Source: Fonticula alba ATCC 38817 | Lineage: Eukaryota > Protista > Nucleariida | Direction: 5' to 3' (one strand) | DNA length: 28,351 nt | Assembly (NCBI GenBank): GCA_000388065.2 | Contig: KB932205.1 | Part shown: positions 18,372-25,876 of the stretch, piece by piece | How positions within the stretch are numbered: position 1 is the stretch's first letter | How the letters are laid out: each line of letters opens with the position of its first letter | Notes under the pieces: generated by a model | What the model saw: the letters and a program-made list of their open reading frames with translations, nothing else | Told to the model about the DNA's origin: nothing | Database searches by the model: none | Translations under genes and position numbers: made by a program

Positions 18372-19621
18372 TCTGACTACTTGTTTTAATCCATATACTC
18401 GCTTGATCGACCTTTGGGTAGATTCCCTGCCTGAGTTCTCTTTCCCCCGGGTCCCGCGCACCACCCGGCCCCTGGTTCCCTAGGCAGGTGCCTTTTTGGG
18501 CGGGAACATCGACCCGCGTGTCCCCTTTTCCCGCCCACCTCGCCGGTATTTTATGAACCCGCGCGCGTGGCAGCGAACGGTGTCCGAGCGCCCTCCTGAA
18601 CGGGGCAGTTGTGTGGTTTCTCGTTCGCCCCTAAACTGCGTTCCTATGGCAGGCCGCGGGGCAGAGTTTATCAACAGAGTTACCCCGGTCCCCGGTGTGC
18701 TCGTCTCGAGAGGTCGAGTGGGGGCCGGGGGGGGGGGGGGGGGCGAGTCGGGAACAGCGCGGGGGCTGGGGGAGGGGATATGGTTAAAGCCCCCTCCTCC
18801 TCGAGGCAGAAGGGCCCCGGTCCCACGTTCCCGGGCGGATTACCTCCGCGTACACGCACAACAACGACGGGGGGAGACCTGTCCGTGCGTGGTGCGTGTG
18901 CGGCTGCTATTAACTCCTTGCGCTCCCGGGTGGGGGGTGGTAACCCATGGTGTGTAGGGCCTTTCTCGTTTCCGGGGCCTCTCCCTGCATCCTCTGTCCT
19001 TGTGTCTTGCTCGTGCTTTTTTTTTTCCCGCCCTTCCCACTTCAAGCACCGTGCATTTCTGTGTCCCCCGGAGACCCGGTGGAATGTTTCGCCGGGAGAT
19101 CCAGGCCTGGTGGATGCCTGGCTTGGGCTCGGGGAAATCCTGACGCATTCGTGCGCCCTTCGCCCCCCCCCCCACCCCCCGGAAAAGTGTTACTTCCCCC
19201 CTTCCCCCCTCCTGTTAATAGCCCCAACTGGGATGCTTAATTTAATCCGGCTGCCCTCCGCCCCCCCCCCCCCCTGTTGCCTGTTGTCTCGCCGCCTCGC
19301 CGCCTCTCGCCGGCGTAGCTTCTTCTCGGACCCCGCTCTTCTTGGGACCCTGGTGCTTCGGCATAGTCCGTCCCTCCCTGGCCCTGCATTCCTCCCCCCT
19401 CCCTCCCTCTTCTTTCTCCGCATTCTTGTCCTCCTCCCCTCGCCGCTTCTCGGTCCGGGCTCTCCTCTCCTTCAGCTGTCACGAGCCGCCGGCGTCTCGT
19501 GCTCACCTTTTCTGTTGTGCGTTCCCCGCCCTGCTTGGCCTGCCTGTCTTCTGCACCCACCGAGCCGAGATCTCTGACTCCCTTTTGGCCTGTGTGTGCG
19601 CACTCCCCTTCTGGTCGACAG

Positions 19622-22600
19622 ATGAGTGCCACCGGGGCGCCGCCTCCGATGGCCTACGGCTACCCGATGGCCCCGCCGCATATGGCATACCCGGCGCCAC
19701 CGGGCACTCCGGCTCCGGCCGGTGCGGCCACTCCGGCTGCCGGGCCCAGCACCCCGGCCCCGGCGCCGCACCCGGGTTACTATCACCCCCCACCGGGGTA
19801 CGGTCCGCCCCCGCCGGCCAGTCCTTCCGGTGCGCTCCTCTTTTTTCCTCGCCTCCCCCCCTCCCTCATCCACTTGTTTATATGACTTTTCTGACGCATC
19901 TGTGCCTTGATTCCCAGGTGTACCTGCTCCAGCTGGGGCTCATCCTCAGGCGCCGCACATGGCATATCCCGGCTACCCCGGTCACTACATGTACCCGATG
20001 ATGCCGCTGCCACCGGCCGCCCCGGCGCCTGTGGCTGCAGCGACTCCCGCTCCGGCTGCCCCCGCTGTCGCAGCGGCGGATGTCACACCGGCCGCCGCGC
20101 CGACTGCCACACCGGCCGCCGCACCGGCCGCCGCGCCGACTGCCACGCCGACCGCCACGCCGGCCGCCACGCCGGCCGCCGCACCGGCTGCCGCACCGGC
20201 TGCCACGCCGGCCGCCACCCCAGCTGCTGCTGATCCTGCAGCTGCCGTCGCTCATCCGCCCCACATGCCAGGCTACTATCCTGGCTACCATCCATACATG
20301 TCCTATCACCCGGGCTACCCGCCCCCAGGACCTCCGCCTCACGGCTATCCCGGCTATGGGGCAGCCCCCGCAGCAGCGCCGACCACCGTTCCTCCTGCTG
20401 CCTCTCCCTCTTCGCCTACTACCCCGGCTCCGGGTGTTGCCCCTGCGGCGGCGGCGGCGGCGGCGGCTGCTGCTGCTGCCTCGCCGGCTCCCGGATCGCC
20501 AGCTGTTACACCCATGTCGGCGCCCATGTCACCGGCACTTGCGGCCAGCGATGCTGCGGCGGCCTCTCCGGCGTCGCCGGCCCCGATGTCTGTTCTCACG
20601 TCTCCCGCGGCTGAGAGTGCCACCTCCACACCATCCCTCCCGGCTGTCAGCTCGCCAGCCGCGCCAGGCACGCCAACGGCCGCGCCTGCTACTCCGGCTG
20701 CGCCTGCTGCTCCGGCGGCTCCGACTGCCGCACCTGCCGGCCCTGCCGCCGTACCTCCCGGCTATCCTCCCTATGGCTATCCGGCTCCGTATGGCTATCC
20801 CCCGTATGGGCATCACCATCCTGGCGCCCCGATGCCTGGCTATGGATACCCGCCGCCGGGGGCTCCGCCTGGGCACATGCCCATGGCCGGGTATCCTGGG
20901 TATCCGCCGCCCCCCCCGGGCGCTGGTTACCATCCAGGCTACCCCCCGCCTGGGTATCCCGCACATCCCGGGGCTCCGTACATGCACGCGCCTGCGGCCA
21001 CTTCGGCCACGGGTGAAGCCGCCGCCGCGGCAGCGACACCCGCCACCAGCGGCACCCCGGGGACCCCGGCCTCGCCGGCCAGCACCCCCACCGCCGGGGC
21101 GGCTGCTGCTCCCGGAGCTGCTGCCGCCACGCCTCCCACTGCTGCCGCTGCTGCTACTGCGGCTTCCATGCCTCCAATGGGCTATCCCCCGATGGGGGGA
21201 TATATGCCGTATCCCGGTCCCTATGGCCATCCGGCGGTGTATGGTGACCCGGCAGCCGCTGGGATGATGCCCGGCATGCCGATGCATGCCTATCCCCCCG
21301 GCATGTACCCGGGCATGGTGCCACACCACCATCCAGGCATGGCCCAGGCCTCGGCCATCGGGGCAGCAACACCTGGGCCCCTGTCCACGGCCGCGGTCCC
21401 TGTCGGTGGCACCGGGGCCACTCCCTCGATCGCCAAGCCAGATGCGGCGGCCACCGGTGAGGAAAGCATTCCCCCCCTGGAGGCGGGATCGGCGGCGGCC
21501 GTGGCCGCGGCCACGGCCGCCACCGGAGATGCCGCCACCTCGACATCGACCGACATCGTCCTGGCAGCGGCCTCGGATGGGGCTCCTCAAAAGCGCCGGC
21601 GCGCCCGCCGGAGCAATGTCGATGGGAGCTCCGCCGGCGCGCCGGCCCCGCGCCGGCGTCGGACCGCCGCCGAGGCGGCCCTTTCCACGGCTCCTTCCTA
21701 CCTGACCGAGCGAGTAATCGATGCCGCGGCGTCGGCCCTGGAGCAGCCGGCCGCGCGTCGGCCCGAGCCCCGGCGCCGGGGGATTGGGCTGATTCAGCCC
21801 TCCAACTTCCGCATCTACTCCGGGCCGTTGGATGTGTGTGTGTTGGTCCTGCGGCATCAAGGGATGAGTGGGCGGCATCCCGTGCGCCCGGATCTCTTTT
21901 ATTATCAGGCTCGGGTGCGGAATTTCTACCCCCAGCGGCATCTGTGGGCCGGGTGGGAAACCAAGCAGGGCATCATCAATCGGGTTCACAGCGTGCGCGA
22001 TGAGTTCCTGCTGAAGCTGGCCGGGATGAATATCCCGGTGCCGGATTCCCTGGACTATGTCATGAAGACCATCCGTCGGACTGGGTCCTTCTCTGTGCCC
22101 CTGAGTGAGGAATATCCGCCGCGTATGGATGCGGCGGCGATGGCGGCGGCGGCCGCCGAAGCAGCGACAGCAGCAACAGCAGCAGTAGCATCGACGGACC
22201 CGACGGCCGTGGTCCCGGCAGCCCCGGGAACGCCCGTCCCCTTGGTGGCGCCGGCTCCCGGTCCCGAGGCGAGTGGTCCAGTGGCCGCCGGTGGTATCGT
22301 GCCGATCGAGGGCACTCCGGCAAATGTGGAGGATGACCTGCTGAAGCGGGCCGCGAGCAGCACCCCCCCCCTGAGCAGCAGCACGGCGACCACGCCGGTG
22401 GCGCTGGCGGCGACGGCGGCAGCCGCCACCCTGGCCCCGACACCTGGTATTTGTGCGCCAGGTGCGGCGCCCGGGGCCGGGGCGGATGGGACGTCCATCA
22501 GCCGGGCAGCCGTCTTCATGCCAGCGACCCATCCTTCTGATGGGTCGGAGGCCGTGGCCTTCGCCCAGGCCCCACATGCGATTCCCCCGTCGCCGCATTC

Positions 22601-23138
22601 GGCCATCATGCAGGCCACTCGCCGGCATACGGTGGCCAATGCCCTGGCGGCCATTCCCTCGTCATCGGTGAGCGCCTCGGCAGCGATCGCGGCGGCCGTT
22701 GACGCGGTCAAGGCGGCAAGTGTTCGTGTGTCTCATGACTCCTCAGCCGGGGATGCTTCTGTGGCTCCGGAACCATTGTCGGCCGGGCTTTTGGTTGCGC
22801 CATCGGCTTCCGCTTCGACTGCTCGGGCCCCGTCGACGGTGGTCTCTCCTGCCGCGGGGGACATGGCCGCCTCGGTCGCTTTGGTCGCGCCTGGGGCGGC
22901 TGCTTCCTCGGCGACGATCATGGTTGGTGCGACCGCGGGCCTGGGTGCGGCGTCGGCACTCCCGCCGGCGCCCTTGCCGCCTGATGCCTCCGCAGTGACG
23001 GCCATGTCGGCTGGCGGTGTGGAGACCGGCGAGGCGGCTGCCGCCGAGGCGGCTCCCTCGGCCGAAAAGGGTGGCGTAAGTGCTGTGCTTGTGGCGGCCG
23101 CCGCAGCCGCCGCGGCAGCCGCTACCTCCTCCCCCTGA
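19622..23138 (+). CDS. Low-complexity (Pro/Ala/Tyr/Gly) probable nuclear protein, candidate transcription factor, 1142 aa, 2 coding exons
   Basis: Exon 19622-19829, intron 19830-19917 (GTGCGC..CTGAC..CCCAG, phase 1), exon 19918-23138: 3429 nt in frame. Basic clusters KRRRARR (21591-21611) and RRRR precede one globular segment (about 21771-22127). The function is inferred. Confidence 0.88.
20085..20222 (+). repeat. Coding 12-bp minisatellite encoding (A/T)A(A/T)P tetrapeptides
   Basis: About 11 degenerate gccgccgcaccg/actgccacgccg units giving TPAAAPTATPAAAPAAAPTATP... Confidence 0.8.
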
Positions 23139-24833: not shown

Positions 24834-24905
24834 TCCCGATTAGTATAGTGGTGAGAATCCCCGCCTGTCACGCGGGAGGCCCGGGTTCAATTCCCGGATC
24901 GGGAG
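24834..24905 (+). tRNA. tRNA-Asp (GTC)
   Basis: Acceptor stem TCCCGAT/ATCGGGA plus G73, anticodon arm CCCGC-CT GTC AC-GCGGG, T arm CCGGG-TTCAATT-CCCGG. No intron and no encoded CCA. Confidence 0.97.
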
Positions 24906-24915: not shown

Positions 24916-25796
24916 GAAATCGGACGCTCGTCCCCGCCGACGCCCATGCTTGAGTTCTCGACGAGAACGGGGGGGGGGGGGTAGATGTCTCCTTGCAAAG
25001 AAGATCAAGAAGCCTCGGGGGGTGGGTCCCTCCAGAAGGAGACCCCGCTCGGCGTTTGTCGGGGGTGTGCTGATGATAACGCCCTTCGCGGGAGCTGGGA
25101 TTGTTTTTCTTCTCGATTGCGGGGGATGTTGGTTATGTGGAGGTCACATCGACGTGCGCTTTCTTTTGCCGGATCACCCGGGGCAGGGCATGCGAAAGGC
25201 TGCGCGTTCATGGCAGGTGTAATCCCCGAGGGGGGCCGGTGGCCGATTCGAGGATCGCTCGGGGGCATTCCATTCCGAGGGGGCCGATGTGCAGGGGAGA
25301 CACACTAATGGGAGGGGGGCAGCGGGGAAGTTGCTAAGAGAGCCCCCTGGCACGGACAGTGTCGCTCGCGTGGGGAAGGATGGGCAGGGACTGGGCAAGG
25401 CATGGGCCGACAGGCTTGTCAGCGTGTGGCTAAAGCACTTACCCCACAGGAGAGGGGAGGAAGGAAGAAGGACTTCCCAATTGAGGGGGGATCCGGGAAA
25501 GAACGGAGCCGCAGGCTGGGAAGCAGGGGACGAGCACGGAAGGCCCCTCACGAGGCGTGTACGGGGGCAGGCCCCCTGTTCCTCCAAGGGACGGTGAGAT
25601 CAAGATCCCCTCGGGAGTCTTGGGGGCACGCGAGCAGGGACACTGACGAAAGAGGGCGATACGCTGGCTTTGGCTGGCGGGGCCGGGAGGGGTGTGGAGA
25701 CCTAGACCGGGGCGGGGGCGGCATGGCGGCTGGTGGCTGGGTTGCGTGAGAGAGTGGAGAAAATATATACCCACGACAGCGGTCCATCTCCAACAT

Positions 25797-25869
25797 GGGG
25801 GCGTAGCTCAAATGGTAGAGCGGCCGCTTAGCATGCGGCAGGCAGGGGGATCGATACCCTCCGCCTCCA
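25797..25869 (+). tRNA. tRNA-Ala (AGC)
   Basis: Acceptor stem GGGGGCG/CGCCTCC with the G3:U70 alanine identity pair and A73. D arm GCTC/GAGC, anticodon arm GCCGC-TT AGC AT-GCGGC, eukaryotic Ala-type T loop ATCGATA. Confidence 0.97.
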
Positions 25870-25876
25870 GATGACC

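Follow-up and report, generated by a model that had tools for sequence, protein, structure and literature searches.

The AP2/ERF domains and the arm domains of integrases are small, basic modules in which an antiparallel sheet is followed by a helix, with arginine and tryptophan residues conserved on the strands. The same features are seen, and for the fold predicted, in a segment encoded in Fonticula alba ATCC 38817, which also resembles the AP2/ERF type in lying within a protein of transcription-factor-like layout. Within the opisthokonts, nucleariids and Fonticula represent the most deeply branching lineage on the fungal side; to our knowledge, their regulatory proteins have hardly been studied. 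In this study, we analyzed a stretch of 28,351 nucleotides of contig KB932205.1 (assembly GCA_000388065.2), referred to as the window (G000:C5:2287665-2316015 in a genome of 31.3 Mb and 214 contigs), in which a first-pass annotation had read the peptide at 21771-22127 as a candidate divergent AP2/ERF-like domain. This peptide was found in the plus frame, within the open reading frame (ORF) 19959-23138, and it contains a real, transcribed and conserved domain of about 75-95 residues. We consider that the domain represents an undescribed and narrowly distributed eukaryotic family with no detectable AP2 homology, and that it most likely binds nucleic acids, a reading to which we give a probability of roughly 0.5 as a whole.

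Results

The domain occupies residues 688-806 of a protein of 1142 amino acids, and only residues ~698-770 align with any relative, the remainder of the protein being unconserved. The first-pass annotation had singled out this peptide as a distinct island, and it is indeed the only part that is conserved elsewhere, far beyond chance. An alignment of 19 sequences gave the core motif NF(R/N)x..G..xSVxVL(R/K)HQGxxG(R)HPx5(F/Y)Y(Y/F)QAR(I/V)RNxYPQ(K/R)H(L/I)W(A/S)GW(E/A), with 11 invariant columns (Q30, G31, G34, Y44, Q46, A47, R48, H57, W59, G61 and W62). In the window, this conserved core covers domain residues 12-63 (21804-21959, plus strand, as are all the features of the gene given below) and includes the RHQG-x2-GRHP loop at 21852-21881. 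It is preceded by a basic N-terminal arm (RRRGIG..., 21771-21803), which in the relatives is rich in arginine and lysine and often reads ...TGG(T/S)(K/R)xD..SP..NF. The core has an isoelectric point of at least 9.7 in 18 of the 19 members, with a net charge of +2 to +7 in those 18, and it harbors six to nine aromatic residues per ~52 positions. All the members display a common layout, in which a region of variable sequence (acidic, Q-rich or Ala/Pro-rich) leads into an Arg/Lys-rich arm and then into the domain; in the relatives, acidic or Q-rich regions occur.

The AP2/ERF reading was examined with the Pfam AP2 model (PF00847), which recovers bacterial AP2 domains at 33-38 bits. It gave zero matches at E<=10 to the window domain, the whole ORF and the 19 members, and it found no canonical AP2 domain in the organism's own genome. 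Comparison by hhalign of the family alignment (A2) with a thin profile (A3) of five genuine bacterial AP2 domains, one of them from Trichodesmium, returned a probability of 0.09% and an E-value of 0.61 over two columns. The profiles of the two integrase arm families (PF13356, PF17293; 16 sequences each) scored 0.1% (Arm-DNA-bind_5) and 0.4% (Arm-DNA-bind_3) against the family. In the control comparisons, AP2 against Arm-DNA-bind_3 reached 18.6% and Arm-DNA-bind_5 against Arm-DNA-bind_3 reached 39.8%; therefore hhalign does detect superfamily-level kinship at such profile depth, and it detected none for the new family. The YRG-type first strand, the WLG third strand and the RAYD-type helix that mark AP2 domains were not found in the 19-member family either.

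Scans of Pfam, PHROGs and the PDB were all blank, both by single sequence and by profile, and the family profile matched the PDB sequences only through a chance stretch of 23 residues in a lyase. When 1.84 billion representatives were searched exhaustively with HMMER, 20 matches were obtained, 15 of them at E < 1e-10. Three of the 20 (P0015, P0018 and P0020) were discarded as repeat proteins without the motif, leaving 17 genuine homolog clusters. All 17 are of metagenomic origin (ENA, JGI or Logan), unnamed and without an NCBI or UniRef record. Three word-based protein searches added no further members and no named ones.

The contigs of the relatives hold split eukaryotic genes, such as those for RIX1, Bud13, RPS3, TEX10, kinesin, Sec7 and Mago nashi. 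A scan of metagenomes disclosed 12 further loci, of which at least five are distinct paralogs of one uncultured eukaryote with 26-28% guanine plus cytosine (GC) (L174-L180; Ga0209960, ERZ778024). Each of the L174-L180 paralogs has a T-rich intron after the domain at a conserved position, and the family is expanded in this organism relative to the two copies in the window genome. One relative's contig stems from the thiocyanate-bioreactor metagenome that is among the nucleariid data sources listed in a preprint (10.1101/2023.12.07.570557), an origin that offers a lead, short of proof, on the taxonomy of that relative. Microsynteny with the contig of the relative P0001 was considered and rejected: the TEX10 gene beside P0001 on that contig matches the window genome 400 kb off the paralog described below, at 34% identity, and the P0001 contig is therefore not from a close relative. 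As a separate observation, the environmental relatives P0003 (residues 101-130) and P0004 (residues 113-143) carry an N-terminal Cys/His motif, C.CC...F.P..F..HAG, which scored 20.9 and 21.5 bits against Pfam TDBD, slightly under the cut-off of 23.6.

A search of the Fonticula genome with the family profile recovered two copies only, the window gene and a single paralog at G000:C6:1686614-1686781(-), the cores of which are 61% identical (E 1e-19). The paralog lies within a Q/A/H-rich open frame of 1775 codons, which contains very long tracts of poly-Q, poly-A and His-rich sequence. Directly after HLWAGWE it displays, at the DNA level, an in-frame, phase-0 GT..AG intron of 102 nt, which the window gene does not have, and downstream of this intron it encodes a helix matching that of the window domain. 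This second-exon helix was left out of alignments A2 and A4, and it entered A1 as a separate, misaligned row. Nearly all the metagenome loci break at GW(E/A)V, which is the position of the paralog's intron, and the reading frames of many relatives run through or are truncated at this same point. The shared intron position and the neighbouring eukaryotic genes support a eukaryotic, vertically inherited domain family.

Two independent AlphaFold2 (AF2) models, with the window domain and P0001 as their first sequences, agree on the order b-b-b-b-a-a, with mean predicted local distance difference test (pLDDT) values of 75 and 84 and a core above 90. In the window domain, the predicted strands are b1 (21807-21821), b2 (21828-21848), b3 (21897-21917) and b4 (21936-21959), followed by a long helix of domain residues 65-85 (21963-22025), in which V72 is invariant in all eight sequences that reach it. 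A second, weakly conserved helix of residues 94-104 (22050-22082) was modelled with low confidence. The extra N-terminal strands that had been suggested from the letters alone were recovered, with FRIYS...VCVLV predicted by AF2 as two strands. The predicted fold contains a b3-a unit within four strands and a helix, which is a common arrangement. From the b3-b4 register of the models, one face would be made up of Y44, Q46 and R48 paired with G61, W59 and H57, and F43, Y45, A47, L58, A60 and W62 would alternate on the opposite face.

Foldseek against the PDB gave no match below E 0.6 for either model. A shape search of the ESM Atlas reached template modelling (TM) scores of at most 0.46, with Arm-DNA-bind_5 at 0.44, and a first feature search of the Atlas returned no usable match. 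The values obtained in the structure searches were all under 8, the guide value of the tool. Neither the superposition on a solved AP2 domain nor the structural matches to integrase arm-type domains were significant. It could still be argued that the domain is a highly divergent AP2/ERF (AP2-integrase) member that has gained a strand at its N-terminus and a long insertion between b1 and b2. A sheet-plus-helix class is compatible with AP2, yet nothing singles AP2 out, and the structural rows tie with unrelated folds. Together with the blank Pfam scans, the hhalign scores far below their controls, the lack of YRG and RAYD-type elements and the absence of a canonical AP2 from the genome, this makes such an origin very improbable, and the AP2 assignment of the first-pass annotation does not stand.

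The same structural lists bear on two further explanations. The domain may correspond to one b4-a unit as in PC4, PUR and Whirly proteins, acting as a dimer on single-stranded DNA or RNA and not on duplex DNA. Its b-b-b-b-a order is that of one PUR or PC4 unit, Foldseek listed MRP1/2, PURA and WHY2 repeatedly for both models, exposed aromatics on a basic sheet fit base stacking, and the Tyr/Gly/Pro/Met-rich N-terminal half of the protein is like that of RNA-binding proteins. However, the MRP, PUR and Whirly rows have E-values of 0.9-3, TM scores of 0.2-0.3 and root-mean-square deviations (rmsd) of 7-12, the PC4, PUR and Whirly folds are missing from the top-50 lists of both VIA searches, and Pfam showed no match to the three families, which leaves this explanation unlikely.

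A chromo-like or other reader domain, which would use its conserved Tyr and Trp residues to bind another protein or modified histone tails and not nucleic acid, is likewise improbable, although several observations fit it. The top structural neighbours act via protein binding, Y44, W59 and W62 are invariant, and the chromo fold also consists of three strands and a C-terminal helix. With the domain of P0001 as query, a language-model feature search led to Chromo and Chromo-shadow clusters at 0.76-0.80, but scores under 0.9 are leads only by the guide of that tool. Moreover, Pfam Chromo was blank, hhalign against the two chromodomains of the organism's own genome gave 0.25%, neither of the two VIA searches listed a chromodomain among its top 50, and the Foldseek rows of Eaf3 had an E-value of ~1 and an rmsd of 7.5. 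With its strongly basic core, the domain also seems better suited to an acidic partner such as nucleic acid than to histone tails, which are themselves basic.

With respect to the gene itself, contigs of two 2012 runs (X2 and X3; listed as 'RNA?') carry the GT..AG joints 19516->19622 and 19829->19918, and are therefore transcript-derived and fix the coding sequence as 19622-19829 plus 19918-23138. The product of 1142 amino acids has the same length as that given by the first-pass annotation, which had also described the protein as intron-containing. The intron of the 5' leader (19517-19621) has an acceptor that directly adjoins the start codon at 19622. Coding exon 1 (19622-19829) comprises 69 codons and one base, is rich in Pro, Tyr, Gly and Ala, and its frame runs on from 19918 after a GT..AG intron of 88 nt (19830-19917) with a CTGAC branch-like site; the joints of both introns were found in X2 and X3 contigs, that of the 88-nt intron being listed as 19828->19917 with 'cut +1'. 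The RNA runs X19 and X22 (organism B) placed no reads on the window and carry no weight for or against its transcription. Coding exon 2 (19918-23138, stop codon included) is collinear with the transcript contigs except for two skipped simple repeats, and the contigs span the domain with zero differences. The transcript contigs show no splicing at a GTAAGT at ~23076.

The contigs break at the simple Ala-codon repeats 20435-20488 and 22127-22195, and some of them join unrelated sequence at repeats, where loose ends and one back-joint (21512->21141) occur; these odd joints at GCC-rich repeats are most likely assembly chimeras. Beyond the domain, the protein consists of 31% Ala and 19% Pro. The two Arg clusters reported to precede the domain were located at 21591-21611 (KRRRARR, residues 628-634) and 21651-21662 (RRRR, residues 648-651), within a stretch at 21591-21662 that resembles nuclear localisation signals, a function which the two clusters may serve. 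The window is GC-rich (56-74%), and its sequence turns up in soil, sediment and sludge runs; a very high GC content has been reported for Fonticula alba (PMC10752896). A tRNA-Asp(GTC) at 24834-24905 and a tRNA-Ala(AGC) at 25796-25870, both on the plus strand, lie just downstream of the gene.

Discussion

The layout of the protein, in which a low-complexity or acidic region and a basic arm precede a compact, basic and aromatic domain, points to a most likely role in binding nucleic acid in the nucleus, a prediction to which we attach about even odds. The domain would then serve nuclear regulators as a module that binds nucleic acid, probably DNA, with a fold predicted as a four-stranded antiparallel meander, a long amphipathic helix and a weaker second helix. 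The face of Y44/Q46/R48 and G61/W59/H57 would be polar, aromatic and exposed, and the residues of the opposite face would pack against the helix. We propose a contact surface in which this exposed face is combined with the basic arm and with the RHQG-x2-G(R)HP loop, which is invariant.

A bolder proposal is that the window gene founds a new transcription-factor family with sequence-specific DNA binding, confined to nucleariid-type protists (Fonticula and uncultured relatives) and built on a b4-a variant unrelated to AP2. We regard this as tentative, with the odds somewhat against it; if true, it would signify a lineage-specific class of regulators in the sister group of fungi, with independently evolved aggregative multicellularity. 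Apart from this proposal, a conserved, expressed and basic domain outside all database families offers a concrete candidate for a regulator that binds nucleic acid and is specific to this lineage. A false lead is also removed, as this study obtained no evidence for AP2 factors in the nucleariid lineage.

In comparison with known systems, a real AP2 alignment displays GV, LG and EAA.AYD..A, whereas the new family displays VLRHQG, YYQAR and HLW(A/S)GW and has no AYD-type helix motif. With PC4, PUR-alpha and Whirly, the domain shares an identical secondary-structure order and a basic, aromatic sheet, but differs in that neither Foldseek nor VIA gave a significant match to them and Pfam gave none. 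With the chromodomain (PF00385), it has in common a short sheet with a C-terminal helix, the junction in which a W-E is followed by the helix, and a weak language-model resemblance; it departs from the chromodomain in being strongly basic, with no evident aromatic-cage pattern and no structural match. MmoD (6d7k_H) and the N-terminal domain of AcrIF24 (7dtr, 7elm) are also among the closest known systems.
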